Numbered from the stretch's first letter, positions 144 through 50,305 are shown. The stretch is 64,000 nucleotides of DNA from Diplonema japonicum (GCA_964019335.1 OZ025660.1:558001-622000), one strand, 5' to 3'. Numbers and translations: made by a program. Notes: a model not told the origin generated them from the letters alone.

Positions 144-1208
144 TCAGCCAATCTTGTAACCCAGGTGGTTGCTGGTGAGGCACTGGGCGTACCACCTGCT
201 CTGCTTGTAGCAAGAGGCCCCGCCGGAGCAGCAGGTGGGGGCGTGAAGGCAGCTTCCCCACTTCGGGATCGCCGTGCGGCAACCAGAGGAAGGAGGGGGA
301 ACAGGAACGGGGACAGGTGGAACAGGAACAGGAGGAGTGGGAGGGGTGGGGACAGGTGGTGTGTTCCCGTTCCCCGCTGCAGGGATGCACTGGGCATACC
401 ACTGGCTCTGCCTGTCGCACACCGCCCCTTGCGTGCAGCAGTGCATCGCGCTCGTGCAAGCCCCCCACATGGGAATCGTCCTCGAGCACCCTGTGGTGGG
501 GGGAACAGGGACAGGGGGAACGGGAACGGGGGGAACAGGAACAGGAGGGACAGGAACAGGAGGAGTGGGAGGGGTGGGAACAGGGGGAACCGGAACAGGA
601 GGAACAGGGTTCCCGCCGCCACCACCACCACCACCACCACCTCCACTGAAGTCCAAGTCAACAGCGTTGTAGAAGCTTGCGGCGGTGTCACCGACATCCC
701 AGATGGCGAGGACAACGTGGTAGCCCGACTTGGAGGGGAGGGTGCAGGAGTGGGTCGTCACCATCGGGGGCTTCACCATCCCGCCCGCCGCGGAGCAGAA
801 GGGAGCATCCTCGAAGCTGCCCCTCCCGAGGGGAGCGTTCTGGTTCCACCCATCCTTCGTGATGTAGTACCTCCAGTCCAGGGTCACGTGGTTCGCCGTG
901 AACTGCCAGGTGAAGTCGGTCCTGCCCCCGCTCGCTGCCGTCTTCGCCCACCTGCTCGAAGACTGCTCGTTCAGAGGGGCCCAGGTCGCGCTCCCCGCCG
1001 CCGCCAGCTGCCCGTCCGGAGGACCGCTCGCTGGGTACCGGTCCGGTCCCTCCACACTCTGCGGCTCGTACTGCACCCCTCCGCACCCGCTGTTTGTCTT
1101 CAGCTTGCACGCGTAGTTCCGAGAAGGCGGGCTCATCACGTAGCCGTGTCCCTCAACCCGCACCACTGCTGCCGCTGCCAGCAGCATCGGAAGTCCCAGG
1201 CGCTTCAT
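144..1208 (-). CDS. Secreted AA10 LPMO (GbpA/CBP21-like) with Gly/Pro-Val linkers and two CBM1-like modules, copy 1
   Basis: Signal peptide MKRLGL...VEG followed by His1 (HGYV), QYEPQSVEG, FTANHVT, WDVGDTAASFYN; two WGxC...CCxxGxxCxxQSxWYxQC modules. Start taken at MKRLG, shared by all four copies. Confidence 0.93.
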   Translation of the reverse strand: MKRLGLPMLLAAAAVVRVEGHGYVMSPPSRNYACKLKTNSGCGGVQYEPQSVEGPDRYPASGPPDGQLAAAGSATWAPLNEQSSSRWAKTAASGGRTDFTWQFTANHVTLDWRYYITKDGWNQNAPLGRGSFEDAPFCSAAGGMVKPPMVTTHSCTLPSKSGYHVVLAIWDVGDTAASFYNAVDLDFSGGGGGGGGGGGNPVPPVPVPPVPTPPTPPVPVPPVPVPPVPVPPVPVPPTTGCSRTIPMWGACTSAMHCCTQGAVCDRQSQWYAQCIPAAGNGNTPPVPTPPTPPVPVPPVPVPVPPPSSGCRTAIPKWGSCLHAPTCCSGGASCYKQSRWYAQCLTSNHLGYKIG

Positions 1209-1320
1209 TTCTCTTCTTCTTTTTTTTTTTTTTTTTTTTTTTTTTGTTGTGTGGAAACTGTGGAGTGAAAATAGAGACAGAGTAGCGAGCCCCCTCTTCC
1301 AACAAGAGGATGAATGGATC

Positions 1321-1360
1321 AAAGGTGCTTCATACACCAGGTAAAGTGGTGTCATCATCT
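1321..1360 (-). pseudogene. 5' fragment of box C/D snoRNA CD4
   Basis: Matches the box C to D' half of CD4 (36755-36853); the box D half is missing. Confidence 0.6.
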
Positions 1361-1404
1361 TGCCCCTTTGCCTACCCCATTGGCCCTCGTGATGGGAATA
1401 TGAA

Positions 1405-1505
1405 TGGATCAGTTTCCTTCTGTCATTTATGTGTTAAAGGGGAATCAGGAGACTGTGTCTTCATAGAATGGACCAATGTTCTTTAACTACGGTGTCATCA
1501 TGTGT
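1405..1505 (-). ncRNA. Box C/D snoRNA CD1
   Basis: Minus strand ATGATGA (1501-1495) ... internal ATGA/CTGA ... terminal CTGA (1412-1409). Four identical intact copies whose conservation ends at the boxes. Target not identified. Confidence 0.8.
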
Positions 1506-1542
1506 TTCCCCCCCCCCCCTCCTCGCAATTGGGCGAGTCACC

Positions 1543-1608
1543 TCTTCTCGCATTGCTTCACAACCATCACCCTATTAAGAGGGAACTGGCTCGCTTATAA
1601 GCTTGCTG
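1543..1608 (-). ncRNA. Single-hairpin AGA-box (H/ACA-like) guide RNA H1
   Basis: Hairpin GCAAGCUU...AAGCAAUGC followed by G-AGA; four conserved copies; target not identified. Confidence 0.7.
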
Positions 1609-1646
1609 AAAGCGTCTTTCCTTTCCCATCTCTCTCTCTTCACTTC

Positions 1647-1703
1647 TCCTCTCGCGGACTGGAGGTATCTTTACTGCGAAAGGCCTTCCGTGGTACCCGT
1701 GCT
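1647..1703 (-). pseudogene. Degenerate copy of AGA guide H2
   Basis: Two 4-nt deletions relative to the intact copies. Confidence 0.55.
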
Positions 1704-1734
1704 GCCTCTCGAGTTTCCTTTTCTTTCGTTGGTG

Positions 1735-1797
1735 TATTCTTGAACCAATATTATTCCGTATCCCTTACAGCAAAGGGCAAGGAGGGTTGCAGGTACT
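1735..1797 (-). ncRNA. AGA-box guide RNA H3
   Basis: ACC/GGU lower stem, UCC/GGA and CCCUU/AAGGG upper stems, 3' AGA; three copies; paralog of H3b. Confidence 0.62.
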
Positions 1798-1831
1798 TTC
1801 TTGTTTCTTCCTTTTTTCTTTGTTCCCCCGC

Positions 1832-1901
1832 GTATCTCGCAGGTTTTTGACCCTCACTTGAACCAGCAACATGGGTTCGCAAGGAACACGAAACACTGCT
1901 G
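1832..1901 (-). ncRNA. AGA-box guide RNA H4 (snR35/SNORA13-like; SSU m1acp3-Psi site)
   Basis: GCAG/CUGC stem; pocket CGUGUU + GUCAAA pairs with universal SSU UUUGAC-UC-AACACG; pocket apex 14 nt from AGA. Confidence 0.9.
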
Positions 1902-1925
1902 CGCTCGTGTGTTGTGTGTGCCCAC

Positions 1926-1993
1926 ATGTCTCGCACCCCTCCAACGCCTCTTTCATGTATGAAGAACGCGAAGTGGTGTTAATTAAGGGTGCT
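1926..1993 (-). ncRNA. AGA-box guide RNA H5
   Basis: GCACCC/GGGUGC stem, ACACC/GGCGU upper stem, G-AGA tail; four copies. Confidence 0.75.
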
Positions 1994-2046
1994 CTCCTTT
2001 CCTTCTACTTCTCCTCCCTCAACCCCCTTCTTTTTGCCCCCGCAAC

Positions 2047-2114
2047 GTATCTCACGCTGATAAAGCGCCCATTCCAAGCATCAACAGTGCCCAACGGGTG
2101 CCGATTACAGCGTT
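2047..2114 (-). ncRNA. AGA-box guide RNA H6
   Basis: ACGCUG/CAGCGU stem, CCCGUU/AAUGGG upper stem, G-AGA tail. Confidence 0.75.
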
Positions 2115-2211
2115 GCCGTTCTTTCTTTGCGGGGTATCGTGTTCTGCATTTTGTGAAGGTGCTGGCTTTCCCATTGTGGTGGTGCTTCTTCCCTCCCTTT
2201 CTTCATGGAAG

Positions 2212-2304
2212 ACATCAGAAGAGGTGTAGTTTGTTGATAATGTTCCATTTCACGCCCCCCCAGGGGGAGGTCATCTAACCGCAATATCGTGTCTCATCAT
2301 CTGT
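2212..2304 (-). ncRNA. Box C/D snoRNA CD2
   Basis: ATGATGA (2300-2294), D' ATGA, CTGA (2218-2215), GACA/TGTC terminal stem. D guide ACACCUCUU is complementary to LSU AAGAGGUGU (yeast Gm2793-equivalent, tentative). Confidence 0.82.
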
Positions 2305-2324
2305 CTCCGTGGGTCGTTCTTTTC

Positions 2325-2390
2325 TTCTCTCGCAAGAAAGCGTAGCTGGGCAGCGGATGCAGTCCTGCAGCCAGTTTAATAAATCTTGCT
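2325..2390 (-). ncRNA. AGA-box guide RNA H7 (SSU site equivalent to human 18S Psi651)
   Basis: GCAAGA/UCUUGC stem; pocket AUUAA + UACGCUU pairs with AAGCGUA-UA-UUAAU (kinetoplastid-type SSU sequence); 14 nt to AGA; single copy. Confidence 0.85.
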
Positions 2391-2432
2391 GCAACAGCTT
2401 GGATCTGTAGTTGTGTTTTCCCCCACTTCCGC

Positions 2433-2502
2433 TTATCTCGCAGGTTTTTGACCCTCACTTGAACCAGCAGCATGGGTTCGCAAGGAACACGAAACACTGC
2501 TG
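2433..2502 (-). ncRNA. AGA-box guide RNA H4 copy
   Basis: One loop substitution versus 1832-1901. Confidence 0.88.
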
Positions 2503-2524
2503 TCTCTTATTATTATGAGAACTA

Positions 2525-2625
2525 ATGATCAGTTTCCTTCTGTCATTTATGTGTTAAAGGGGAATCAGGAGACTGTGTCTTCATAGAATGGACCAATGTT
2601 CTTTAACTACGGTGTCATCATGTGG
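2525..2625 (-). ncRNA. Box C/D snoRNA CD1 copy
   Basis: Identical to 1405-1505 between the boxes. Confidence 0.8.
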
Positions 2626-2649
2626 TCCTCGCAATTGGTTAGGTTCGCC

Positions 2650-2715
2650 TCTTCTCGCACTGCTTCACAACCATCACCCTATTAAGAGGGAACTGGCTCG
2701 CTTATAAGCTTGCTG
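2650..2715 (-). ncRNA. AGA-box guide RNA H1 copy
   Basis: Near-identical to 1543-1608. Confidence 0.7.
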
Positions 2716-2763
2716 AAAACTTCCTTCCTTCCTTCCTTGCTCTCCCATGTCTCTCTTCACTTC

Positions 2764-2828
2764 TCCTCTTGCATCAGGACTGGAGGATGGTATCTTTACT
2801 GCGAAAGGCCTTCCGTGGCACCCGTGCT
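2764..2828 (-). ncRNA. AGA-box guide RNA H2
   Basis: GCA/UGC stem, GGAAGG/UCCUCC upper stem, AGA tail. Pockets are invariant across six copies while the apex varies. Confidence 0.72.
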
Positions 2829-2937
2829 TCTTCTTGTCTCTTCTTCCTCTTTGTGTCTCCTCCTCTTCCATGATGAGCTGCTGCGGTATTGCAATGCGGG
2901 TTTCCTTCCGCAGCACTCTACCCACTTTGTTACGCTC

Positions 2938-3007
2938 TCATCTCCCGCCCACTTTCACCCTGCAGCACAAACAGAGTGTGACTGCTGCAACGACAGCGGA
3001 GGACGGT
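2938..3007 (-). ncRNA. AGA-box guide RNA H8
   Basis: CCGYCC/GGGCGG stem, UGCAGCA/UGCUGCA upper stem, G-AGA tail; four copies. Confidence 0.72.
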
Positions 3008-3114
3008 GGTATGTTTTTGTTGCTAGAAAACAAAAAGATACTGTACAGATGACAAGGGAACCTGTTCAAGAAAACCTCACAGGTTGCCGTTAACTCACCT
3101 TCTATTCCACTTCC

Positions 3115-3177
3115 TTCTCTCGCACCAGTATTATCCCGCAACCCTTACCACAAAGGGCACTGGTCCTTGATGGTGCT
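3115..3177 (-). ncRNA. AGA-box guide RNA H3b
   Basis: GCACCA/UGGUGC stem, CCCUU/AAGGG apex shared with H3, G-AGA tail. Confidence 0.72.
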
Positions 3178-3292
3178 GCATCAGGATAGCAACAAAGTTG
3201 GCTAAAAGGTACTAAGTTATAAAAAGAAACAAAAAGAATACAATAATAGTACACAAGGCGGAGGAGGAGGGGGGGGGGTAAATTTATACTTC

Positions 3293-4663
3293 CTACAACC
3301 TTCCATGAAAGAAAGGGTCTCTTGAATGCGAATGGCCCGAAGGGACCGGTGTGAAGTGAGGATAATGGTACGGCAAAGGAAAGGGCGAAGGAGGAGGAAC
3401 GGAACGCGTCTTCTTTCGGCGAGATTTTTTCTTCTCACCGTGTTCGTAGACAAGAGGGGGTGGAAGGTCTAAGGACCTGCTGCTACGCACGGACGGCTCC
3501 GAGATTCTCACCGTTTTCCGGCTTCTTGTAGAACCTGCAAGTGTTGGTGTGGGTGACAACGAGGAGACGTCGAAGAGCTGTGCAGAGAAGATATCAGCTG
3601 CGGTTTTGCTTTGAAAGGCATTTTGTTTTCTCTCTTCGATCTTTTTTTTCAACGCTTTGACGATGTCGCGTTTCTTCGACAGTGTCCGCTGCATCTCGGT
3701 GACGGCCTGTTGCTGCTCCGCGTAGAAACGGAACATCTCTGGTGTGTCAGCAGGCTCTAGATCTGTTTGCGTTGAAAATTCCTTGGTTTTTACAACTTTA
3801 ACACTTCGAAGTGTTTTGCGGATATCGTCGTTTTCCCTTTCCAACTCCCTCAAGGCACCCCTCCGTTCCGCTTCATCCTCAGCAGTGTCGAGAATTCTAT
3901 CCTCCAAGCATCGAAGCTCTGTCCGGATGATTTGTATTTCACGATCTGCGTACTTTTTGTTTTCTTCTATCCGGACGGCGGAAGATACTTCAAGCCTCTC
4001 CCCCCACGATGATTCCACAGACTCCGCCCATGAAAGAAGCCATTTCAAATCAGGTCTTGTCTCCGGGCGTTTGTCAACTAGCTCGTTATACAGCGCACGC
4101 GGGTCATCAATAAAACTCTTAATTACATCAACCGCATTATGTTCCATCAGAATGTTGTGGTTTTCATGGTATCTTTCCAATTCTTTTGCGAGGTGTAAAT
4201 GCCGTTTGTTTTCACGCTGGCATGCTGAGGCCCATTCAAAGAGAAAGCCGAATTCGTGTGCCTGAGACGGGAATTTTTCAGGTAGATCTTTGCACAGTCC
4301 AGCAGGATCGTGCGAAAAAGAATCGATCAGACCCCCCGCAGAGTCTGCTCTGGATGCCAGCCCGTGTCGTCCGTAGAAGATACGGAGTTTTTCGGCGGCT
4401 CTAGCATGTCGGGGCTGTCTATCGTGTAAAAAGTTTTCTGGTCGGGATTTCCACTTATCCTGCAATCTGCGAAGCCTTGCGCCCTCTAGCGGTCCATACT
4501 CGAAGAAGTCTCCCCTCATAAAGGCTGATTTCCCTACGCCTTTCTTCCAAAGCTGTCCAACTATCTTCCCTGGTACCCCGTATCTCCTTAGTAAATCTCG
4601 CACGCCATCGCACCCATGTACACGGTCCATGCCATCAGTGTGTTTGGTACCGCTTTCTCTCAT
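3293..4663 (-). CDS. Hypothetical coiled-coil protein
   Basis: 456-aa ORF with two short helical repeats (FYGRHG...LxxKxP) and a coiled-coil middle. Confidence 0.7.
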   Translation of the reverse strand: MRESGTKHTDGMDRVHGCDGVRDLLRRYGVPGKIVGQLWKKGVGKSAFMRGDFFEYGPLEGARLRRLQDKWKSRPENFLHDRQPRHARAAEKLRIFYGRHGLASRADSAGGLIDSFSHDPAGLCKDLPEKFPSQAHEFGFLFEWASACQRENKRHLHLAKELERYHENHNILMEHNAVDVIKSFIDDPRALYNELVDKRPETRPDLKWLLSWAESVESSWGERLEVSSAVRIEENKKYADREIQIIRTELRCLEDRILDTAEDEAERRGALRELERENDDIRKTLRSVKVVKTKEFSTQTDLEPADTPEMFRFYAEQQQAVTEMQRTLSKKRDIVKALKKKIEERKQNAFQSKTAADIFSAQLFDVSSLSPTPTLAGSTRSRKTVRISEPSVRSSRSLDLPPPLVYEHGEKKKSRRKKTRSVPPPSPFPLPYHYPHFTPVPSGHSHSRDPFFHGRL

Positions 4664-35439: not shown

Positions 35440-35586
35440 ATTTTTTTAGTTTTTTTTTATGGTTGAACTGTGTTTTTAACTTCCCTTTTCCCTGCTGTTC
35501 CTGCCTGTGCCTTCAGGTTGGACTAAGTGAGTATGATTCTTTTTTGGCATTTTCAATTTTGGCCCTTTTTCTTTTTTTTGGTACAT

Positions 35587-35649
35587 TTTTCTTGAACCAA
35601 TATTATTCCGTATCCCTTACTACAAAGGGCAAGGAGGGTTGCAGGTACT
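35587..35649 (-). ncRNA. AGA-box guide RNA H3 copy
   Basis: Differs from 1735-1797 only in the apical loop. Confidence 0.62.
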
Positions 35650-35670
35650 TCTTCGTGTGTTTTCCCCCGC

Positions 35671-35722
35671 GTATCTCGCAGGTTTTTGACCCTCACTTGA
35701 ACCAGCAACATGGTAACACTGC
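35671..35722 (-). pseudogene. Degenerate H4 copy
   Basis: Deletion removes the CGUGUU pocket strand. Confidence 0.65.
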
Positions 35723-35748
35723 TGCGCTCGTGTGTTGTGTGTGCCCAC

Positions 35749-35816
35749 ATGTCTCGCACCCCTCCAACGCCTCTTTCATGTATGAAGAACGCGAAGTGGT
35801 GTTAATTAAGGGTGCT
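35749..35816 (-). ncRNA. AGA-box guide RNA H5 copy
   Basis: Identical to 1926-1993. Confidence 0.75.
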
Positions 35817-36029
35817 CTCCTTTCCTTCTACTTCTCCTCCCTGGGTGGTCCCCCATCCCCTTTCCCCCCGTTGTGTAGATCACAAGCGCCCATTCCAAGC
35901 ATCAACAGTCCAACGGGTGCCGATTACAGCGTTGCCGATCTTTCTTTGCGGGGTATCGTGTTCTGCATTTTGTGAAGGTGCTGGCTTTCCCATTGTGGTG
36001 GTGCTTCTTCCCTCCCTTTCTTCATGGAA

Positions 36030-36124
36030 GACATCAGAAGAGGTGTAGTTTGTTGATAATGTTCCATTTCACGCCCCCCCAGGGGGAGGTCATCTAACCG
36101 CAATATCGTGTCTCATCATCTGTC
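36030..36124 (-). ncRNA. Box C/D snoRNA CD2 copy
   Basis: Identical boxes and guides. Confidence 0.82.
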
Positions 36125-36167
36125 TGCTGAAACCAAACAAATCAAAAAGAAACAAAAAGAAAAGCAG

Positions 36168-36232
36168 CGTTCTCACCAGCACATCGAACCACATGCACCA
36201 TGATGAGCTGCTGCGGTATTGCAATGCGGGTT
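36168..36232 (-). ncRNA. AGA-box guide RNA H9
   Basis: ACC.GCA/UGC.GGU stem, ACCGCA/UGUGGU upper stem; pocket predicts target AUCGA-UN-AUUGCAA, fitting the SSU GGGAUNGANNAUUGCAAUU region (tentative). Confidence 0.75.
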
Positions 36233-36258
36233 TCCTACTGCAACGCTCCTTGGCACTC

Positions 36259-36328
36259 TCATCTCCCGCCCACTTTCACCCTGCAGCACAAACAGAGTGT
36301 GACTGCTGCAACGACAGCGGAGGGCGGT
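36259..36328 (-). ncRNA. AGA-box guide RNA H8 copy
   Basis: Intact stems and AGA tail. Confidence 0.75.
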
Positions 36329-36388
36329 GGAAGAGCCAGGATAGAATGAAATTGTGTCGAATGAAGAGCCTTGGCTACAAATGGAAAG

Positions 36389-36475
36389 AAGTCAGAAGTC
36401 CTTGTTTGTAAATCATGAATTGAAAGATCAGAAGCAAGACTGGCATGTCGTGAAAGGGTCGTTGTCATCATCTTG
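36389..36475 (-). ncRNA. Box C/D snoRNA CD3 (snR61/U38-like, LSU Am)
   Basis: ATGATGA...CTGA(D')...ATGATT(C')...CTGA. D' guide GCCAGUCUUGCUU pairs with AAGCAAGACUGGC, a variant of conserved LSU UAAGCAGAACUGGC; the +5 rule selects the A after AAGC. Confidence 0.85.
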
Positions 36476-36594
36476 GTTTGTGCAAAAAAGGACATCAAAA
36501 AGGCAAAAGAGAACCGCTGGAGTCTCACGCTGATAAAGCTCCCACCTTAGAGGGCATCTATTAATTTTCTTTTATTTTATTTCACCCTAATTAC

Positions 36595-36745
36595 CTCAGT
36601 TTATTTTTCAAAAAACACAGTTCTATCGCAGACCAGCCAACCCTGAAGGGCCGACCGACTAGGATCGGAGGTGACAGAATGGGTGTGTTGAGTTCTCATC
36701 ACAGAGTTCCCATTCGTAGGAAAGTCCCCGCTTCTCCCAAAACAG
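36595..36745 (-). ncRNA. Unassigned structured RNA X (three copies)
   Basis: Conserved module with GTGATGA and CTGA motifs, three hairpins and an AGAACU motif; class unknown. Confidence 0.5.
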
Positions 36746-36754
36746 AAAAAAAGG

Positions 36755-36853
36755 AGACATCAGAACAGATCTTGGTTTGCGAATGGAATGGTTGTACACA
36801 CTGCACCCAAAGGTGCTTCATACGCCAGGTAAAGTGGTGTCATCATCTTGTCT
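36755..36853 (-). ncRNA. Box C/D snoRNA CD4
   Basis: ATGATGA (36846-36840), D' ATGA, CTGA (36763-36760), AGACA/TGTCT terminal stem. D guide AACCAAGAUCUG is complementary to LSU CAGAUCUUGGU(U). Confidence 0.88.
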
Positions 36854-36896
36854 TAGGTAGGTTTGGCTGTTGGGCTCCTCCTCTTCCATGATGAGG

Positions 36897-36961
36897 TGTT
36901 CTCACCAGCACATCGAACCACATGCACCATGATGAGCTGCTGCGGTATTGCAATGCGGGTT
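36897..36961 (-). ncRNA. AGA-box guide RNA H9 copy
   Basis: Identical to 36168-36232. Confidence 0.75.
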
Positions 36962-36987
36962 TCCTACTGCAAAGCTCCTTGGCACTC

Positions 36988-37055
36988 TCATCTCCCGCAC
37001 TTTCACCCTGCAGCACAAACAGAGTGTGACCGCTGCAACGACAGCGGAGGGCGGT
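36988..37055 (-). ncRNA. AGA-box guide RNA H8 copy (weakened)
   Basis: 2-nt deletion in the lower stem; may be decaying. Confidence 0.5.
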
Positions 37056-37110
37056 GAAAGAGCCAGGATGGAATGAAATTGAGTCAAGAGCCTTGACAAC
37101 AAATGGAAAG

Positions 37111-37196
37111 AAGTCAGAAGTCCTTGTTGTAAATCATGAATTGAAAGATCAGAAGCAAGACTGGCATGTCGTGAAAGGGTCGTTGTCATCATCTTG
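37111..37196 (-). ncRNA. Box C/D snoRNA CD3 copy
   Basis: Boxes and guides intact. Confidence 0.85.
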
Positions 37197-37236
37197 GTTT
37201 GCGCAATTATTTTTCTTTTCTTCGTCTCGCTTCCGC

Positions 37237-37305
37237 TTATCTCGCAGGTTTTTGACCCTCACTTGAACCAGCAGCATGGGTTCGCAAGGAACACGAAACA
37301 CTGCT
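37237..37305 (-). ncRNA. AGA-box guide RNA H4 copy
   Basis: Intact pocket and AGA. Confidence 0.88.
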
Positions 37306-37586
37306 GTCAGATTTAACAGAAGTGTGCAAATGGGAGAACAGTGCAAGACAAAGGAGAAGAATGGCAAATGAAATATTAGGAATACTAGAACAGCGAAAGC
37401 CCAATGTCCTTCGAGAATTAAAAGATAAAAGGGAACAAAGGAAGAGAGGGAGTGGAGGGAGGGAAAAGTGTAACCAGACATGTGTCATGGTTACGAGGTA
37501 TAACGGGGGAGGAGGGGGGGATGCTCTCGGCCCACCACAGGTGGGCGAGGGGGATCATATAGGTACTGTCTATTTTCCAAGGAAAA

Positions 37587-37793: not shown

Positions 37794-38858
37794 TCAGCCA
37801 ATCTTGTAGCCGAGGTGGTTGCCGGTAAGGCATTGGGCGTACCACCTGCTCTGCTTGTAGCAAGAGGCCCCGCCGGAGCAGCAGGTGGGGGCGTGAAGGC
37901 AGCTTCCCCACTTCGGGATCGCCGTGCGGCAACCAGAGGAAGGAGGGGGAACAGGAACGGGGACAGGTGGGACAGGAACAGGAGGAGTGGGAGGGGTGGG
38001 GACAGGTGGTGTGTTCCCGTTCCCCGCTGCAGGGATGCACTGGGAATACCACTGGCTCTGCCTGTCGCACACCGCCCCTTGCGTGCAGCAGTGCATCGCG
38101 CTCGTGCAAGCCCCCCACATGGGAATCGTCCTCGAGCACCCTGTGGTGGGGGGAACAGGGACAGGGGGAACGGGAACGGGGGGAACAGGAACAGGTGGGA
38201 CAGGAACAGGAGGAGTGGGAGGGGTGGGAACAGGGGGAACCGGAACAGGAGGAACAGGGTTCCCACCGCCACCACCACCACCACCACCACCTCCACTGAA
38301 GTCCAAGTCAACAGCGTTGTAGAAGCTTGCGGCGGTGTCACCGACATCCCAGATGGCGAGGACAACGTGGTAGCCCGACTTGGAGGGGAGGGTGCAGGAG
38401 TGGGTCGTCACCATCGGGGGCTTCACCATCCCGCCCGCCGCGGAGCAGAAGGGAGCATCCTCGAAGCTGCCCCTCCCGAGGGGAGCGTTCTGGTTCCACC
38501 CATCCTTCGTGATGTAGTACCTCCAGTCCAGGGTCACGTGGTTCGCCGTGAACTGCCAGGTGAAGTCGGTCCTGCCCCCGCTCGCTGCCGTCTTCGCCCA
38601 CCTGCTCGAAGACTGCTCGTTCAGAGGGGCCCAGGTTGCGCTCCCCGCCGCCGCCAGCTGCCCGTCCGGAGGACCGCTCGCTGGGTACCGGTCCGGTCCC
38701 TCCACACTCTGCGGCTCGTACTGCACCCCTCCGCACCCGCTGTTTGTCTTCAGCTTGCACGCGTAGTTCCGAGAAGGCGGGCTCATCACGTAGCCGTGTC
38801 CCTCAACCCGCACCACTGCTGCCGCTGCCAGCAGCATCGGAAGTCCCAAGCGCTTCAT
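37794..38858 (-). CDS. AA10 LPMO with two CBM1-like modules, copy 2
   Basis: 354 aa, near-identical to copy 1. Confidence 0.93.
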   Translation of the reverse strand: MKRLGLPMLLAAAAVVRVEGHGYVMSPPSRNYACKLKTNSGCGGVQYEPQSVEGPDRYPASGPPDGQLAAAGSATWAPLNEQSSSRWAKTAASGGRTDFTWQFTANHVTLDWRYYITKDGWNQNAPLGRGSFEDAPFCSAAGGMVKPPMVTTHSCTLPSKSGYHVVLAIWDVGDTAASFYNAVDLDFSGGGGGGGGGGGNPVPPVPVPPVPTPPTPPVPVPPVPVPPVPVPPVPVPPTTGCSRTIPMWGACTSAMHCCTQGAVCDRQSQWYSQCIPAAGNGNTPPVPTPPTPPVPVPPVPVPVPPPSSGCRTAIPKWGSCLHAPTCCSGGASCYKQSRWYAQCLTGNHLGYKIG

Positions 38859-38984
38859 TTCTGTTTTTGTTCTTTTCTTTTTTGTTTTGTGTGGAAACTG
38901 TGGAGTGAAAATAGAGACAGAGTAGCGAGCCTCCTCTCCCCCTTATTTCTCGTGGACCCTTTTTGAATGGGAAAAATGAATGGA

Positions 38985-39140
38985 TCAGTTTCCTTCTGTC
39001 ATTTATGTGTTAAAGGGGAATCAGGAGACTGTGTCTTCATAGAATGGCTCGCTTATAAGCTTGCTGAAAGCTCTTTTCCCTCCATTCCCATCACCCTTCC
39101 TTGGGCTTGACTGGCTCGCTTATAAGCTTGCTGAAAGCTC
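38985..39140 (-). pseudogene. Truncated CD1 fused to H1 fragments
   Basis: CD1 lacks box C and joins the H1 5' half at a TGG microhomology; the H1 fragment is then repeated. Confidence 0.65.
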
Positions 39141-39163
39141 TTTTCACTCCATTCCCATCACTC

Positions 39164-39228
39164 TCCTCTCGCATCAGGACTGGAGGATGGTATCTTTACT
39201 GCGAAAGGCCTTCCGTGGCACCCGTGCT
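39164..39228 (-). ncRNA. AGA-box guide RNA H2 copy
   Basis: Intact. Confidence 0.72.
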
Positions 39229-39674
39229 GTGTTCCTCGAGCTTTTACTTCACTCGCTCTTTCTTCTTCTTTGTGTCCTCATCTCCCGCCCTGCAGCACAA
39301 ACACAAAAACAAAATAAATACAAGGACAACTATTTTCTCTCTCTTTTATTACCAAAAAACAGTATGACAAGAGAAAAAACAAGTGGGGGACAGATCAAGA
39401 TGAAGAAAAACCATAGAACAAAGATTACAAAAGACAAATGAGTTAAAGGAGATCGTTGTGAGACGCTCCTGAAAAAAAGGAGGGAGGTGAGAAGAGAGAA
39501 TGCACCGGAAAAAATGGATGTATCACGGAAGGTTTTTCTTTTGAAAAAAGTGTGATATTCATACAAACCCTTTTTGCTCAGTGCAAATGTAAAGGAGGGG
39601 AAATGAAACCAGTTCCTTAACAGAAGCTGAGGATCAGATAAGAATGGGAAGGAGAGGGAGGATGTTCTAGTTCT

Positions 39675-40511: not shown

Positions 40512-40577
40512 GATTCTTGCATCAGGACTGGAGGAAGGATCACTTTACAATTAAAGGCCTTCCGTGGCACCCGTGCT
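40512..40577 (-). ncRNA. AGA-box guide RNA H2 variant
   Basis: Same pockets and stems, different apex. Confidence 0.7.
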
Positions 40578-40604
40578 TTTTCTTTTAGTTTCTTTCTCCA
40601 CAAC

Positions 40605-40672
40605 ATGTCTCGCACCCCTCCAACGCCTCTTTCATGTATGAAGAACGCGAAGTGGTGTTAATTAAGGGTGCT
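40605..40672 (-). ncRNA. AGA-box guide RNA H5 copy
   Basis: Two single-nt deletions in homopolymers. Confidence 0.62.
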
Positions 40673-40763
40673 CTTTCTTCTCCTCGGGGGTTACTTTTCC
40701 TTTTTTTTTTCTTTTTTGTTGAACCTTTGGATTTCCCTCGTTTCGTGCCCTTTCCCTGGTTTA

Positions 40764-40915
40764 CTCAGTTTATTTTTCAAAAAAACACAGTTCTATCGCA
40801 GACCAGCCAACCCTGAAGGGCCGACCGACTAGGATCGGAGGTGACAGAATGGGTGTGTTGAGTTCTCATCACAGAGTTCCCATTCGTAGGAAAGTCCCCG
40901 CTTCTCCCAAAACAG
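40764..40915 (-). ncRNA. Unassigned structured RNA X, copy 2
   Basis: Identical to 36595-36745. Confidence 0.5.
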
Positions 40916-40925
40916 AAAAAAAGGA

Positions 40926-41020
40926 GACATCAGAACAGATCTTGGTTTGCGAATGGAATGGTTGTACACACTGCACCCAAAGGTGCTTCATACGCCAGGT
41001 AAAGTGGTGTCATCATCTTG
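40926..41020 (-). ncRNA. Box C/D snoRNA CD4 copy
   Basis: Boxes and guides intact. Confidence 0.86.
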
Positions 41021-41487
41021 CGTGCTTTGTCCAGGTTTGGCTTTGGCTCATACCCTTCTATGAGGATCAAAGCAGAAATCTACTAAGAAAAAAAATATCT
41101 TTTTAAAAAATAAAGAAGAAATGAAAGAAGGAAAGGAAGAACTAAGGAAGGAACATAAAAGGAAGAAAAAAAAGGGGGAAACGTAAAAAAGAATAACATT
41201 CTTTCCCCCCCCCCCCCCCTGCATACAATTAATAAATGAATCATACCAACGATAGAAGGGGTGTCCAGCAACCCCCCCCCCCCCCCCCCCACCAAAAGCT
41301 GGCAATAAAAAAAGCAGGACATCTTAAGATGTGCATGCAATTTAAAAAAAAAAAGTCGGTACTTAAGAGATCGCATACCGCTTTTTGTTTGAATGTAACA
41401 GGCTTTCATCTAAAGAGGAAGGGTCCCTTATCAAAGACCCCGTCTTTTTTTTTCTTTTTTTTTTTTTTTTGTATCCCCATCCTTCCT

Positions 41488-42243: not shown

Positions 42244-42361
42244 TTGTTTTGTGGAATGGAGGAGTGGAGGGGTATTTTTTTCGCCTCTTTATTTGGTTTG
42301 TGTGTTTTTTTTTTTTCTTCTTCTTTGTATCTTCTCGTTCTCGATTTTCCTACAAAGTAGT

Positions 42362-42430
42362 GATTCTTGCATCAGGACTGGAGGAAGGATCACTTTAGAT
42401 GAGTAAAAGGCCTTCCGTGGCACCCGTGCT
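42362..42430 (-). ncRNA. AGA-box guide RNA H2 variant
   Basis: Same pockets, third apex variant. Confidence 0.7.
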
Positions 42431-42521
42431 TTTTAAGCCAAATCCAACGAACAAGTTAATTAAGATGCCAGAGTTACTTTTTAAAAAAGGAGATTTCTAC
42501 TTCAAAAGGTAACAAAAACAG

Positions 42522-42586
42522 TAGTCTCACGCTGATAAAGCTCCATTCCAAGCATGAGGTGCCCAACGGGTGGTATGTACAGCGTT
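42522..42586 (-). ncRNA. AGA-box guide RNA H6b
   Basis: H6 paralog with an altered 5' pocket strand. Confidence 0.65.
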
Positions 42587-42612
42587 TCTTTTCCTTTCAT
42601 ATTCCACCAGAA

Positions 42613-42678
42613 CTGTCTCGCATTGCTTCACAACCATCACCCTATTAAGAGGGAACTGGCTCGCTTATAAGCTTGCTG
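42613..42678 (-). ncRNA. AGA-box guide RNA H1 copy
   Basis: Intact. Confidence 0.7.
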
Positions 42679-42728
42679 AAAGCTTATTTCCCTCCTTCCT
42701 TTTGCTCTCCCATCTCTCTCTTCACTTC

Positions 42729-42793
42729 TCCTCTCGCATCAGGACTGGAGGATGGTATCTTTACTGCGAAAGGCCTTCCGTGGCACCCGTGCT
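42729..42793 (-). ncRNA. AGA-box guide RNA H2 copy
   Basis: Intact. Confidence 0.72.
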
Positions 42794-42843
42794 GTGTTCC
42801 TCGAGCTTTCACTTCACTCGCTCTTTTCTTCTTCTTTGTGTCC

Positions 42844-42913
42844 TCATCTCCCGCCCACTTTCACCCTGCAGCACAAACAGAGTGTGACTGCTGCAACGAC
42901 AGCGGAGGGCGGT
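42844..42913 (-). ncRNA. AGA-box guide RNA H8 copy
   Basis: Intact. Confidence 0.75.
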
Positions 42914-42967
42914 GAAAGAGCCAGGATGGAATGAAATTGTGTTTGAGCCTTGACGACAAATGGAAAG

Positions 42968-43053
42968 AAGTCAGAAGTCCTTGTTGTAAATCATGAATTG
43001 AAAGATCAGAAGCAAGACTGGCATGTCGTGAAAGGGTCGTTGTCATCATCTTG
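42968..43053 (-). ncRNA. Box C/D snoRNA CD3 copy
   Basis: Intact. Confidence 0.85.
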
Positions 43054-43111
43054 GTTTGTGCAAAAAAGAAAAAGGAAACCTTTTCCTCAAAAAGGCAAAA
43101 GAGAACCGCTG

Positions 43112-43177
43112 GAGTCTCACGCTGATAAAGCTCCCATTCCAAGCATGAGGTGCCCAACGGGTGGTATGTACAGCGTT
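43112..43177 (-). ncRNA. AGA-box guide RNA H6b copy
   Basis: Intact ACGCUG/CAGCGU stem and AGA. Confidence 0.7.
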
Positions 43178-43223
43178 GCGTTGTGTTGCGTTGCCTGTCC
43201 CTCCACTCCAAGGAGAAGGGTGT

Positions 43224-43319
43224 GCATCAGACGATGCCGTCTCACTGGTGTCTGCTCAGCACCAACAGAAGCCTGCCGGTTCATAAAAAATAGGATCTAA
43301 GTGGTGAATCATCATCTGC
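43224..43319 (-). ncRNA. Box C/D snoRNA CD5
   Basis: ATGATGA (43315-43309), internal ATGA/CTGA, terminal CTGA (43230-43227), GCA/TGC stem. D guide CGGCAUCGU is complementary to SSU ACGAUGCCG; single copy. Confidence 0.78.
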
Positions 43320-43364
43320 TCATTCCTTGGAGGGTATCTATTTATTTTATTTCCCCCTAATTCT

Positions 43365-43560
43365 CTCAGTTTATTTTTCAAAAAAAACACAGTTCTATCG
43401 CAGACCAGCCAACCCTGAAGGGCCGACCGACTAGGATCGGAGGTGACAGAATGGGTGTGTTGAGTTCTCATCACAGAGTTCCCATTCGCAGGAAAGTCCC
43501 CGCTTCTCCCAAAACAGAAAAAAGGCGATGTTTAAGGGCAAATCCCACTCGAGGACCACC
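43365..43560 (-). ncRNA. Unassigned structured RNA X, longest copy
   Basis: Retains about 45 nt of upstream sequence deleted in the other two copies. Confidence 0.5.
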
Positions 43561-43571
43561 CTAAAAAAGGA

Positions 43572-43666
43572 GACATCAGAACAGATCTTGGTTTGCGAAT
43601 GGAATGGTTGTACACACCGCACCCAAAGGTGCTTCATACGCCAGGTAAAGTGGTGTCATCATCTTG
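43572..43666 (-). ncRNA. Box C/D snoRNA CD4 copy
   Basis: Intact. Confidence 0.86.
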
Positions 43667-44414
43667 CCCACGACGGGACCCACCCCACCCCAGCAAGCAC
43701 AGAGTTGTGAATAAACAAGAATAACAAGAAAATAGCTCAGGAAAAGAAGAAAAGAGGGAGGAATGGAGCACCCAAAGGTGGGATGCCTTTTTTTTGCCAA
43801 AGAAGCAGGTAGAGTTAAGTCTCTCCGTCTCTCTATGTCCTTTCTTCATTTCGTGTGTTTATCCTCATGATCAAGTTGCTACTAAGTTGTAACGCCTACA
43901 GACGTCATCTACGGGTTGACGAACTTACATACTCAAATTGAAGAAAGCAAAAAACAACGAAACGGGAAATGAATGGAGGAACAGAAGATCACTGCAAATG
44001 AAGAGGTGTTCGCAGCAAAGGCCCACCGTAAAAAATAAGGGCACGAAAAAAAGAAAACAAAGCACAACCCCCTCAAAGAATGTGGAGTTATATCCACACC
44101 TGTTCTGCGGGGGTTCATGAAGTATAGCCCAGCTGTAGTAGGCTAGCTAGAATGTTGGGAAGAAAGTGTGGTGATCCTTCGGAGGGATGGGAACAGAGAG
44201 CAGTGGAGCTGCGGACCACTCTTTCTCATTGTGGTTCGTGGTGTCTTTCTTTCATTCTCTCCTTTTTTTTCCCCCCTCTCTGTCCCCTCCTCATCCGGAG
44301 GATCGTTTGTTTTTTTTTTCTTTTTTTTTTTCTCTTTTTTTTCTTCTTTCCTTTTGTTCTCTCGTGGGAATTTTATTTTTATGCATTTTATCATAAAAAC
44401 TACGGACTACTGTC

Positions 44415-47657: not shown

Positions 47658-48722
47658 TCAGCCAATCTTGTAACCCAGGTGGTTGCCAGTGAGGCACTGG
47701 GCGTACCACCTGCTCTGCTTGTAGCAAGAGGCCCCGCCGGAGCAGCAGGTGGGGGCGTGAAGGCAGCTTCCCCACTTCGGGATCGCCGTGCGGCAACCAG
47801 AGGAAGGAGGGGGAACAGGAACGGGGACAGGTGGGACAGGAACAGGAGGAGTGGGAGGGGTGGGGACAGGTGGTGTGTTCCCGTTCCCCGCTGCAGGGAT
47901 GCACTGGGAATACCACTGGCTCTGCCTGTCGCACACCGCCCCTTGCGTGCAGCAGTGCATCGCGCTCGTGCAAGCCCCCCACATGGGAATCGTCCTCGAG
48001 CACCCTGTGGTGGGGGGAACAGGGACAGGGGGAACGGGAACGGGGGGAACAGGAACAGGTGGGACAGGAACAGGAGGAGTGGGAGGGGTGGGAACAGGGG
48101 GAACCGGAACAGGAGGAACAGGGTTCCCACCGCCACCACCACCACCACCACCACCTCCACTGAAGTCCAAGTCAACAGCGTTGTAGAAGCTTGCGGCGGT
48201 GTCACCGACATCCCAGATGGCGAGGACAACGTGGTAGCCCGACTTGGAGGGGAGGGTGCAGGAGTGGGTCGTCACCATCGGGGGCTTCACCATCCCGCCC
48301 GCCGCGGAGCAGAAGGGAGCATCCTCGAAGCTGCCCCTCCCGAGGGGAGCGTTCTGGTTCCACCCATCCTTCGTGATGTAGTACCTCCAGTCCAGGGTCA
48401 CGTGGTTCGCCGTGAACTGCCAGGTGAAGTCGGTCCTGCCCCCGCTCGCCGCCGTCTTCGCCCACCTGCTCGAAGACTGCTCGTTCAGAGGGGCCCAGGT
48501 TGCGCTCCCCGCCGCCGCCAGCTGCCCGTCCGGAGGACCGCTCGCTGGGTACCGGTCCGGTCCCTCCACACTCTGCGGCTCGTACTGCACCCCTCCGCAC
48601 CCGCTGTTTGTCTTCAGCTTGCACGCGTAGTTCCGAGAAGGCGGGCTCATCACGTAGCCGTGTCCCTCAACCCGCACCACTGCTGCCGCTGCCAGCAGCA
48701 TCGGAAGTCCCAAGCGCTTCAT
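47658..48722 (-). CDS. AA10 LPMO with two CBM1-like modules, copy 3
   Basis: 354 aa, same protein as copy 2. Confidence 0.93.
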   Translation of the reverse strand: MKRLGLPMLLAAAAVVRVEGHGYVMSPPSRNYACKLKTNSGCGGVQYEPQSVEGPDRYPASGPPDGQLAAAGSATWAPLNEQSSSRWAKTAASGGRTDFTWQFTANHVTLDWRYYITKDGWNQNAPLGRGSFEDAPFCSAAGGMVKPPMVTTHSCTLPSKSGYHVVLAIWDVGDTAASFYNAVDLDFSGGGGGGGGGGGNPVPPVPVPPVPTPPTPPVPVPPVPVPPVPVPPVPVPPTTGCSRTIPMWGACTSAMHCCTQGAVCDRQSQWYSQCIPAAGNGNTPPVPTPPTPPVPVPPVPVPVPPPSSGCRTAIPKWGSCLHAPTCCSGGASCYKQSRWYAQCLTGNHLGYKIG

Positions 48723-48819
48723 TTCTCTTCTTCTTTTTGTTGTGTGGAAACTGTGGAGTGAAATGGAAAAACAGTGATTAATCAGAACAGTGAACCCCCT
48801 CTTCCACTAGTGGAATGAA

Positions 48820-48920
48820 TGGATCAGTTTCCTTCTGTCATTTATGTGTTAAAGGGGAATCAGGAGACTGTGTCTTCATAGAATGGACCAATGTTCTTTA
48901 ACTACGGTGTCATCATGTGC
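48820..48920 (-). ncRNA. Box C/D snoRNA CD1 copy
   Basis: Intact. Confidence 0.8.
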
Positions 48921-49030
48921 ATTCTCATTTCTATCACCTCGTCGCAAAGGTCACCATGCTATGTACCTGCAGCTTACACTGCTCTGCGGTAATCAACTTG
49001 CTGCAAAAGGCAGTTGGCTTTTTGAATTTT

Positions 49031-49093
49031 TTTTCTTGAACCAATATTATTCCGTATCCCTTACAGCAAAGGGCAAGGAGGGTTGCAGGTACT
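49031..49093 (-). ncRNA. AGA-box guide RNA H3 copy
   Basis: Intact. Confidence 0.62.
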
Positions 49094-49151
49094 TCTTCGT
49101 TCTATTGCACCCGCTTGTTACAAGCTTGCTGTGCAGGTTATATCTGCCCGC

Positions 49152-49221
49152 GTATCTCGCAGGTTTTTGACCCTCACTTGAACCAGCAACATGGGTTCGC
49201 AAGGAACACGAAACACTGCTG
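49152..49221 (-). ncRNA. AGA-box guide RNA H4 copy
   Basis: Intact. Confidence 0.88.
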
Positions 49222-49245
49222 CGCTCGTGTGTTGTGTGTGCCCAC

Positions 49246-49313
49246 ATGTCTCGCACCCCTCCAACGCCTCTTTCATGTATGAAGAACGCGAAGTGGTGTT
49301 AATTAAGGGTGCT
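49246..49313 (-). ncRNA. AGA-box guide RNA H5 copy
   Basis: Intact. Confidence 0.75.
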
Positions 49314-49368
49314 CTCCTTCTTTTCGAGTATTCCCCTCCCCCAGCCCCCTTCTTTTTTACCCCGCAAC

Positions 49369-49432
49369 GTATCTCACGCTGATAAAGCATTCCAAGCATC
49401 AACAGTGCCCAACGGGTGCCGATTACAGCGTT
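49369..49432 (-). pseudogene. Degenerate H6 copy
   Basis: 4-nt deletion destroys the upper stem. Confidence 0.55.
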
Positions 49433-49545
49433 GCCGTTCTTTCTTTGCGGGGTATCGTGTTCTGCATTTTGTGAAGGTGCTGTTGTACTTCCTCTCTCCC
49501 CCCTCAGACAACCCCCGGTTTGTTTCCCTCCCTTTCTTCATGGAA

Positions 49546-49639
49546 GACATTAGAAGAGGTGTAGTTTGTTGATAATGTTCCATTTCACGCCCCCCCAGGG
49601 GGAGGTCATCTAACCGCAATATCGTGTCTCATCATCTGC
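49546..49639 (-). pseudogene. CD2 copy with mutated box D
   Basis: CTGA changed to CTAA. Confidence 0.6.
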
Positions 49640-49689
49640 CGTCCTTGCGTGCCGGTGCTTCCTTGTTTCTTTCCTCGTCCCGCTTCCGC

Positions 49690-49759
49690 TTATCTCGCAG
49701 GTTTTTGACCCTCACTTGAACCAGCAGCATGGGTTCGCAAGGAACACGAAACACTGCTG
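49690..49759 (-). ncRNA. AGA-box guide RNA H4 copy
   Basis: Intact. Confidence 0.88.
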
Positions 49760-49781
49760 TCTCTTATTATTATGAGAACTA

Positions 49782-49882
49782 ATGATCAGTTTCCTTCTGT
49801 CATTTATGTGTTAAAGGGGAATCAGGAGACTGTGTCTTCATAGAATGGACCAATGTTCTTTAACTACGGTGTCATCATGTGG
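49782..49882 (-). ncRNA. Box C/D snoRNA CD1 copy
   Basis: Intact. Confidence 0.8.
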
Positions 49883-49906
49883 TCCTCGCAATTGGTTAGG
49901 TTCGCC

Positions 49907-49972
49907 TCTTCTCGCACTGCTTCACAACCATCACCCTATTAAGAGGGAACTGGCTCGCTTATAAGCTTGCTG
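49907..49972 (-). ncRNA. AGA-box guide RNA H1 copy
   Basis: Intact. Confidence 0.7.
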
Positions 49973-50008
49973 AAAACTTCTTTGTTTTCCCATCTCCCTC
50001 TTCACTTC

Positions 50009-50073
50009 TCCTCTCGCATCAGGACTGGAGGATGGTATCTTTACTGCGAAAGGCCTTCCGTGGCACCCGTGCT
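50009..50073 (-). ncRNA. AGA-box guide RNA H2 copy
   Basis: Intact. Confidence 0.72.
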
Positions 50074-50153
50074 GCTTCTTCTTGAGTTTCCTTTTTGCGT
50101 TCTCTTCCCTGGGTGGTACCCCCCCAACCCTCTTTCCCCCCATTGTGTAGATC

Positions 50154-50221
50154 ACATCTCACGCTGATAAAGCGCCCATTCCAAGCATCAACAGTGCCCA
50201 ACGGGTGCCGATTACAGCGTT
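50154..50221 (-). ncRNA. AGA-box guide RNA H6 copy
   Basis: Intact. Confidence 0.75.
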
Positions 50222-50305
50222 GCCGTTCTTTCTTTGCGGGGTTGCTGGCTTTCCCATTGTGGTGGTGCTTCTCCCGCTTTTCTTCATGGCAGACACGCCC
50301 CCCTA

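Follow-up and report, generated by a model that had tools for sequence, protein, structure and literature searches.

A probable mixed cluster of C/D and AGA-box snoRNA genes in a diplonemid, probably Diplonema japonicum

In Trypanosoma brucei and Leishmania major, genes for box C/D small nucleolar RNAs (snoRNAs) and for single-hairpin RNAs carrying an AGA box lie mixed in reiterated clusters, and the RNAs are processed from polycistronic transcripts (PMC2613932, PMC3273796). In Euglena gracilis, as the work on that organism is cited in two other papers (PMC2784804, PMC2613932), guide genes are multicopy, linked, and clustered, and the H/ACA-type RNAs are single hairpins. For diplonemids, a full-text literature search found no paper describing snoRNAs. 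Here we describe a string of conserved modules at positions 1320 to 3178, on the minus strand, of a 64,000-nucleotide (nt) stretch of one contig (C13:558001-622000; hereafter the window, with positions counted from its first base). This string is very probably a mixed cluster of C/D and AGA-box snoRNA genes from a diplonemid, probably Diplonema japonicum.

The trypanosomatid H/ACA-like RNAs have a well-described consensus: a single hairpin, 57 to 91 nt long, in which two stems flank an internal pocket and the apical loop has 5 nt or more; a stem I of 5 to 8 base pairs (bp), usually with an A just 5' of it, followed by 1 to 3 unpaired nt and then AGA 3 nt from the 3' end; and a target U 13 to 16 nt upstream of the AGA, flanked by guide strands of 3 to 9 nt (PMC2613932). 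The hairpins described here resemble these in length (57 to 91 nt), in an AGA 3 nt from the inferred 3' end, in the A before stem I, and in a pocket 13 to 16 nt from the AGA. The clusters are likewise trypanosomatid-like, with both RNA types mixed and reiterated on one strand and with C/D RNAs that have two guides. Unlike the trypanosomatid clusters, which are identical tandem units, those described here are mosaics of different composition that fill a long succession of protein-gene spacers across 360 kb or more; the large-subunit (LSU) ribosomal RNA (rRNA) of the host is continuous; and sequence similarity is too low for a match to any Rfam trypanosomatid family. With Euglena gracilis, insofar as that system is portrayed in the two citing papers (PMC2784804, PMC2613932), the locus shares multicopy linked genes of both classes and single-hairpin pseudouridylation guides.

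The layout is the known euglenozoan one, and the gene set is one that a specialist would expect and find unsurprising; the accepted view of snoRNA function is unchanged by it. The locus indicates that the AGA design and the mixed, reiterated clusters are common to all three main euglenozoan lineages, and both are therefore probably ancestral. The locus would provide the first guide-RNA set for diplonemids, which are very abundant but little-studied marine protists, and it yields concrete site predictions, namely eight 2'-O-methylations and up to four pseudouridines.

Layout and recurrence of the modules

Nineteen modules of 44 to 101 nt lie on the minus strand between 1320 and 3178, separated by low-complexity, mostly purine-rich spacers. 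Their order, 5' to 3' on the minus strand, is H1a, X2, H3, H4, H5, H6, CD7, H8, H9, CD10, X11up, H11, H12, H8, H1b, H5~, H6, CD7, CD13~. When the minus strand of 1201-3300 was compared with the window by blastn, modules recurred at 35589-37308, 38967-39229, 40515-41021, 42365-43669, and 48815-50556, on the minus strand only and in differing orders. The preliminary description of this DNA had reported recurrences in new orders at sites that match these within a few bases. Three of the further clusters are as follows.

35586 to 37308, minus strand: second cluster, with full-length CD13, CD14, CD15 (two copies), H3, and H17, together with CD10, H12, and H8
42361 to 43669, minus strand: further cluster, including CD16 (43222-43320)
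48814 to 50606, minus strand: further cluster, a rearranged paralogue of 1320-3178

Alignment of the copies with 45 nt of flanking sequence gave blocks that are about 95 to 100% identical and have sharp edges, beyond which the flanks are noise. The conserved 3' edge falls 2 to 3 nt past the AGA in the hairpin blocks and a few nucleotides past the CTGA in the C/D blocks, and it is from this conservation that we infer the RNA ends. Across the window, the pairing of RTGATGA with a CTGA 35 to 110 nt further on was counted 20 times on the minus strand versus 4 times on the plus strand, and all four plus-strand cases lie inside open reading frames (ORFs). The module string is real and far beyond chance.

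These copy alignments and motif counts bear out the earlier picture of conserved modules, either bounded by ATGATGA and CTGA or formed by a hairpin ending in AGA, set among variable low-complexity spacers on the minus strand. The further statement that every module is one or the other holds for most of them; it fails for the single-copy, box-less X2, for the unstructured X11up, and for three truncated or damaged copies. Where some 16 snoRNA families had been proposed, we count about 19 module families in the window.

Within 264 kb of contig C13 that were read, 187 module copies, without exception on the minus strand, group into 23 clusters that differ in composition. A search of the assembly (62.5 Mb, 132 contigs) gave 145 matches to the cluster genome-wide; with a single exception they fall on the minus strand of C13, from 329 to 687 kb. 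Altogether, no fewer than 23 clusters of varied composition, this one among them, lie in a stretch of one chromosome that spans at least 360 kb. The sole match off C13 is a CD7-like copy on the plus strand of another contig (C1:706625-706728).

The preliminary description, made without knowledge of the origin of the sequence, assigned it to a probable diplonemid, and this assignment gains support from two features of the genome. A spliced-leader motif of the kinetoplastid/diplonemid type occurs 241 times, versus 0 times for its reversed control, and the LSU gene, in a ribosomal DNA (rDNA) unit of 6825 bp, is continuous over 3480 nt. A continuous LSU is reported for diplonemids and not for metakinetoplastids or euglenids (PMC9082867). 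The genome note for Diplonema japonicum YPF1604 describes a genome of 62.3 Mb that is as yet unannotated and has poly(A) RNA sequencing only (PMC13598402). Fragments of small-subunit (SSU) rRNA also occur outside the rDNA array (100 to 590 nt, 48 to 300 bits; contigs C37, C78, C80, C18, C34, and C22).

Box C/D modules

Seven C/D families are present in the window (CD7, CD10, CD13, CD14, CD15, CD16, and CD17), each with a C box that matches exactly (AUGAUGA, or in one family GUGAUGA) and a CUGA D box, both invariant across copies. Three families use AUGA as D'. Terminal stems of 3 to 4 bp can be read directly from the sequence in CD10 (GACA/UGUC), CD13, CD15, and CD16. The intact C/D modules of the cluster are these.

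2524 to 2624, minus strand: CD7, first copy; C box AUGAUGA, D' box AUGA, D box CUGA; CD7 has 14 full copies at 98 to 100% identity
2212 to 2305, minus strand: CD10; terminal stem GACA/UGUC, D' box AUGA; copies 99 to 100% conserved
1405 to 1504, minus strand: CD7, second copy; 100% identical to 48815-48919

The guide potential of these families was assessed against the organism's own SSU, 5.8S, and LSU rRNAs, taken from locus L007 and numbered so that the Rfam match begins at position 1. As candidate D or D' boxes we took each CTGA or ATGA that follows a C box (n = 16), and for each of them an ungapped rRNA duplex of at least 11 bp ending 0 to 1 nt upstream was sought. Half of the boxes (8 of 16) adjoin a duplex of 11 to 14 bp with the organism's own rRNA, and methylation sites were assigned in the fifth-nucleotide register. 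By comparison, 40 shuffled rRNA sets gave a mean of 0.6 such boxes and a maximum of 3, while reversed, complemented, and sense rRNA gave 0 each; a Poisson estimate for the 8 matches is about 3e-7. Complementarity to the organism's own rRNA, whose absence the preliminary description had named as refuting it, was therefore found well above the shuffled mean. The predicted 2'-O-methylation sites are as follows.

CD7, D' box: LSU U2387, 13 bp perfect, 1 nt from the box
CD7, D box: LSU C2403, 11 bp perfect, 1 nt from the box
CD10, D' box: LSU C1934, 12 bp with one G-U, flush with the box
CD10, D box: LSU G2524, 13 bp with one G-U, flush with the box
CD13, D' box: LSU C1060, 13 bp
CD13, D box: LSU G1503, 13 bp
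CD15, D' box: LSU A1200, 14 bp
CD16, D box: SSU U1237, a perfect 14-mer against SSU 1233-1246

The identification of the C/D modules as snoRNAs is well supported by their boxes, by short terminal stems in four families, and by box-adjoining rRNA complementarity. The C/D RNAs of the cluster itself (two copies of CD7 and one of CD10) would guide fibrillarin-type 2'-O-methylation of LSU rRNA, and a gene for fibrillarin, the protein partner, is present in the genome.

Another point of contact with known guides comes from CD15. At an E-value threshold, Rfam returned weak generic C/D hits, and the exception was CD15 (36389-36476), which aligns to RF00476 (snR61/Z1/Z11) along the entire model (positions 1-85 of 85) and scores 22 bits (E = 0.41; gathering score, 45). 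CD15 shares with snR61/Z1/Z11 (in a clan with U38) the guide CAGU(C/U)(U/C)UGCUU and the CUGA after it; this guide is complementary to the conserved LSU motif GGUAAGCAG(G/A)ACUGG and is also matched by Dictyostelium DdR13, and the second half of the RNA is unrelated to snR61/Z1/Z11. The predicted target of CD15 would then correspond to the known snR61 site. CD15 probably works like snR61, but with 22 bits against 45 it is not a member of RF00476 by the Rfam criterion.

CD14, found at 36594-36704, 40765-40872, and 43366-43474, is a long C/D-like RNA of 107 to 111 nt with GUGAUGA and CUGA ends and an internal GC-rich hairpin. It has a perfect 14-nt complement to LSU 2911-2924, with no recognizable D' box after it.

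AGA-box hairpins

The hairpin modules are 59 to 70 nt long, apart from H17 (94 nt). A mechanical parse of six of the eight families (H1a, H3, H8, H9, H11, and H12) gave a stem I of 4 to 8 bp, one unpaired nucleotide, AGA, and three further nucleotides. The same layout was reached in H5 and H6 only with an interrupted stem I paired by hand; with these two included, an A immediately 5' of stem I and one nucleotide before the AGA are found in 8/8 families. Stem I has 6 bp in H1a, H3, H9, and H11, 8 bp in H12, and 4 bp in H8, the last being below the consensus range of 5 to 8. For H1a, H6, H8, H9, H11, and H12, the minimum-free-energy (MFE) fold of RNAfold returned stem I, pocket, stem II, loop, and a free (G)AGANNN tail unprompted, whereas the MFE fold of H3 pairs the ends differently and its centroid keeps stem II only. 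Folding z-scores of the AGA hairpins that RNAfold recovered range from -3.5 to +0.2. The hairpin modules of the cluster, with the P values of the rRNA target search described below, are listed here.

3115 to 3178, minus strand: H1a, AGA hairpin, stem I GCACCA/UGGUGC; 4 copies in 264 kb
2938 to 3006, minus strand: H3, AGA hairpin, stem I 6 bp, stem II 7 bp and perfect; 17 full copies; target P 0.16
2765 to 2826, minus strand: H5, AGA box, interrupted stem I GCA-CGGG / CCUG-A-UGC; 17 full copies; target P 0.94
2650 to 2716, minus strand: H6, AGA hairpin, two subfamilies differing in the 5' pocket strand
2433 to 2501, minus strand: H8, putative AGA guide, pocket strands CGUGUU and GUCAAA
2323 to 2392, minus strand: H9, AGA hairpin, stem I GCAAGA/UCUUGC
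2047 to 2116, minus strand: H11, stem I ACGCUG/CAGCGU; 19 full copies; z = -2.2; two subfamilies (5' pocket strand), target P 0.41 and 0.71
1926 to 1994, minus strand: H12, 8-bp stem I; 14 copies, all 100% identical; z = -3.5; target P 0.15
1832 to 1900, minus strand: H8, second copy, 97% identical to 2429-2502, same pocket
1543 to 1611, minus strand: H6, second copy, from blastn and alignment

The preliminary description had proposed single-hairpin AGA guides with an internal pocket about 14 nt from the AGA. The architecture agrees with the published consensus (PMC2613932) in every feature that could be tested, and the top of the pocket lies 13 to 16 nt from the AGA in 8/8 families. In H5, the apical loop varies among copies, and the CUUU/AAAG stem is kept. 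We hold with good confidence that the hairpins are probably AGA-box snoRNAs. A reading of H3 and H17 as one two-hairpin H/ACA RNA, in which AGAUGA fits an H box, was rejected because H3 occurs 17 times without H17 and because the nucleotides after the H17 AGA vary.

Which of the hairpins would act on rRNA is a separate question. An unconstrained search for bipartite H/ACA targets, applied to every AGA in the clusters, did no better on the real rRNA than on reversed or shuffled rRNA, and the pockets were therefore fixed from the structure before the target search. An automatic per-family search gave P <= 0.1 for H8 and H17 only. Four pockets stand out, three from the structure-fixed search with 100 shuffles and one from the automatic search.

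H8: SSU UUUGAC-UC-AACACG (U1405), 14 nt from the AGA; 6+6 Watson-Crick pairs; a fraction of 0.02 of 100 shuffles as good
H1a: SSU U1834; 5+7 Watson-Crick pairs; a fraction of 0.01 of 100 shuffles as good
H9: SSU U649; 6+6 pairs; a fraction of 0.02 of 100 shuffles as good
H17: SSU U1821; 5+8 pairs; 0.05 in the automatic search with 60 shuffles

Fisher's combined test over 10 pockets gave P = 0.003. In the structure-fixed search with 100 shuffles, H3, H5, H6, H11, and H12 had no rRNA pocket above chance. The context of U1405 is presumably that of the conserved, hypermodified m1acp3-pseudouridine site of yeast snR35 and human SNORA13. If this identity is right, H8 resembles the snR35/SNORA13-type guides in that its pocket pairs with the UUUGAC-UC-AACACG loop, and it differs from them in being a single hairpin with an AGA rather than a two-hairpin H/ACA RNA, and in having no Rfam match.

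The five families that lack such a pocket bear on an alternative in which the C/D modules are snoRNAs but most of the hairpins are something other than rRNA guides: orphan AGA-like RNAs, guides for small nuclear RNA (snRNA), spliced-leader RNA, or tRNA, or elements for the processing or structure of the precursor. Five of about 10 families without a pocket above chance, the lack of enrichment in the unconstrained search, and an H5 that forms no hairpin by minimum free energy all favor it, and AGA-like RNAs of the same shape that are independent of CBF5 have been described in trypanosomes (PMC2613932). Against these stand the architecture, which fits the guide consensus in every tested feature, the four families with significant SSU pockets (the presumed conserved site at U1405 among them), and a high copy number with near-perfect conservation, which argue for abundant functional RNAs. 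On balance, we consider this alternative unlikely, though it is the strongest of those weighed here. The proposal that the AGA hairpins guide modification of the organism's own rRNA stands for the four of about 10 families with convincing pockets, and we accept as predicted rRNA pseudouridylation guides only H8, H1a, H9, and H17, all directed at the SSU. The other hairpins may act on different RNAs or belong to the orphan AGA-like class. Within the cluster, H1a, H3, H5, H6, the two copies of H8, H9, H11, and H12 would be single-hairpin H/ACA-like RNAs, of which some at least would guide SSU pseudouridylation.

Standing, genomic setting, and expression of the cluster

Several results weigh against reading the locus as a snoRNA gene cluster. 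The case for the locus is drawn from genomic sequence. Rfam gave 0 hits at the gathering score over the whole window, which also makes the claim that the modules are invisible to annotation true as far as Rfam is concerned. A pattern scan of metagenomes for a CD15 orthologue found none. No terminal stem is evident on inspection in CD7. The folding z-scores are of modest size, those of H5, H9, and H17 being close to zero or positive; the MFE fold of H5 (z = +1.5) lacks the expected hairpin. The paralogues are too alike to reveal compensatory base changes, and intact copies vary only by wobble-compatible changes. To these must be added the null result of the unconstrained target search and the five hairpin families without a pocket. 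Assembled contigs from two runs that may be RNA, though their type is unconfirmed, cover 1409-1805 and 1879-2162, each with several modules and spacers, and their depth in both runs is like that of a single-copy gene rather than a 15- to 25-copy repeat. The depths hint at RNA runs and at a precursor RNA, a hint on which we do not rely, given the unconfirmed run type and given that a contig does not equal a single transcript.

The absence of Rfam hits at the gathering score, the high copy number, the mosaic order, and the truncated copies with microhomology junctions would also be expected if the modules were dispersed repeats (SINE-like [short interspersed element], MITE-like [miniature inverted-repeat transposable element], or a complex satellite) that have no RNA function and whose boxes and rRNA matches are coincidental. 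This is very improbable, given some 19 module sequences that are unrelated to one another and individually sharp-edged, box-adjoining rRNA complementarity far above the null, the confinement of all copies to one strand and one chromosomal region, no sign of terminal repeats or of target-site duplications, and one module that aligns to snR61/Z1/Z11. Least credible of all is that the blocks are cis-regulatory elements of the flanking mRNAs (for untranslated-region function, trans-splicing, or polyadenylation) duplicated along with the LPMO genes described below; the clusters do lie in untranslated or intergenic space and are co-duplicated with those genes, but the same modules occur in other orders between unrelated genes, and no part in mRNA processing is known for their boxes, hairpins, or antisense elements.

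The mixed snoRNA cluster, which we prefer to these alternatives, also contains modules that are damaged or that fall into neither class.

3040 to 3111, minus strand: X2, single-copy, hairpin-containing, without C/D or AGA boxes; z = -0.6; unclassified
2861 to 2926, minus strand: H4, a copy of H17 (94 nt) missing the 3' 41 nt, including the AGA; deletion between two CTCATCATGG repeats, by comparison with the full copy at 36897-36990
2122 to 2172 (also 49440-49490 and L022:8427-8476), minus strand: X11up, conserved, unstructured, box-less, 44 to 51 nt; z = +1.5; unclassified
1736 to 1794, minus strand: H1b, related to H1a but diverged, its stem I weak (4 bp); z = -0.2
1642 to 1701, minus strand: H5~, an H5 copy that has lost 4 nt from the 3' strand of stem I
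1320 to 1365, minus strand: CD13~, a partial CD13 that keeps its 5' half (C box, first guide, D') and lacks the D box, by comparison with full copies at 36755-36850, 40930-41016, and 43576-43662

X2 may simply be spacer. X11up always lies between CD10 and H11 and carries a 12-nt complement to LSU 1461-1472. H1b is possibly decaying, H4 is a probable pseudogene, and CD13~ is a pseudogene, in which a TG microhomology marks the junction with the tail otherwise found after CD7. Deletions at a short repeat (CTCATCATGG in H4) and at microhomology (the TG junction of CD13~) indicate birth-and-death turnover of gene copies, and the region of at least 360 kb would have been built by repeated duplication, unequal recombination, and microhomology deletion.

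All long ORFs of the window lie on the minus strand, as do the modules. The features that flank the cluster are as follows.

3296 to 4663, minus strand: upstream protein-coding ORF of 456 amino acids (aa), without a Pfam hit
1258 to 1284, minus strand: pyrimidine tract plus AG, CACTCCACAG/TTTCCACAC, conserved ahead of all 4 LPMO copies
147 to 1208, minus strand: downstream protein gene with an LPMO_10 domain (Pfam E = 5e-45)

About 115 nt separate the stop codon of the 456-aa ORF from the start of the cluster, and about 60 nt separate the end of the cluster from the pyrimidine tract and AG at 1258-1284, a candidate and probable spliced-leader acceptor of the downstream LPMO gene. The cluster would, in other words, fill the spacer from the stop codon of one gene to the probable spliced-leader acceptor of the next. 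From what is established on snoRNPs and on euglenozoan gene expression, the modules would be carried with the flanking genes on an RNA polymerase II (Pol II) polycistronic precursor, co-transcription being suggested by the common strand. Core snoRNA-protein (snoRNP) components would bind the C/D and AGA motifs, nucleases would trim the spacers up to the protected ends and so free the mature RNAs, and the released RNAs would guide methylation and pseudouridylation of pre-rRNA. What the sequence shows directly are the repeats, the sharp edges of conservation, the boxes and stems, and the rRNA complementarity; the mature RNA ends, the co-transcription, and the modifications themselves we infer.

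The composition of the spacers may be relevant to such a route. In spacers inside clusters (C13:325-525 kb plus the window), the median purine fraction of the transcribed strand is 0.64; runs of 12 or more purines have a density of 10.3/kb versus a background of 2.6-2.9/kb (about a 4-fold enrichment), and pyrimidine runs of such length one of 0.65/kb versus 2.5-2.9/kb (about a 4-fold depletion). Avoidance of trans-splicing and polyadenylation signals would fit this composition, which is only an idea. A broader and decidedly tentative conjecture is that about 19 snoRNA families are confined, with hardly an exception, to one single-strand domain spanning 360 kb or more, in which mosaic clusters fill successive spacers of a protein-coding polycistron. 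The spacers within these clusters would have become rich in purines and poor in pyrimidine tracts in the course of evolution, which would let the clusters escape the machinery for trans-splicing and polyadenylation and be processed by snoRNP-guided trimming instead. If this were true, it would represent a distinct solution to expressing snoRNAs inside Pol II polycistrons, and the single-hairpin AGA design would be shown to be ancestral to all Euglenozoa.

For annotators, the practical consequence is that ORF callers will start genes wrongly on C boxes. The ATG at 1358, where the ORF list begins the LPMO gene, belongs to the C box of CD13~, and the real start is at 1208. Four copies of this LPMO_10 (AA10) gene are present in the window (147-1208, 37794-38858, 47658-48722, and 52315-53544), co-duplicated with snoRNA clusters. 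Their closest named relatives, eukaryotic transcriptome entries aside, are bacterial GbpA-type proteins, with about 50 to 60% identity over the domain.

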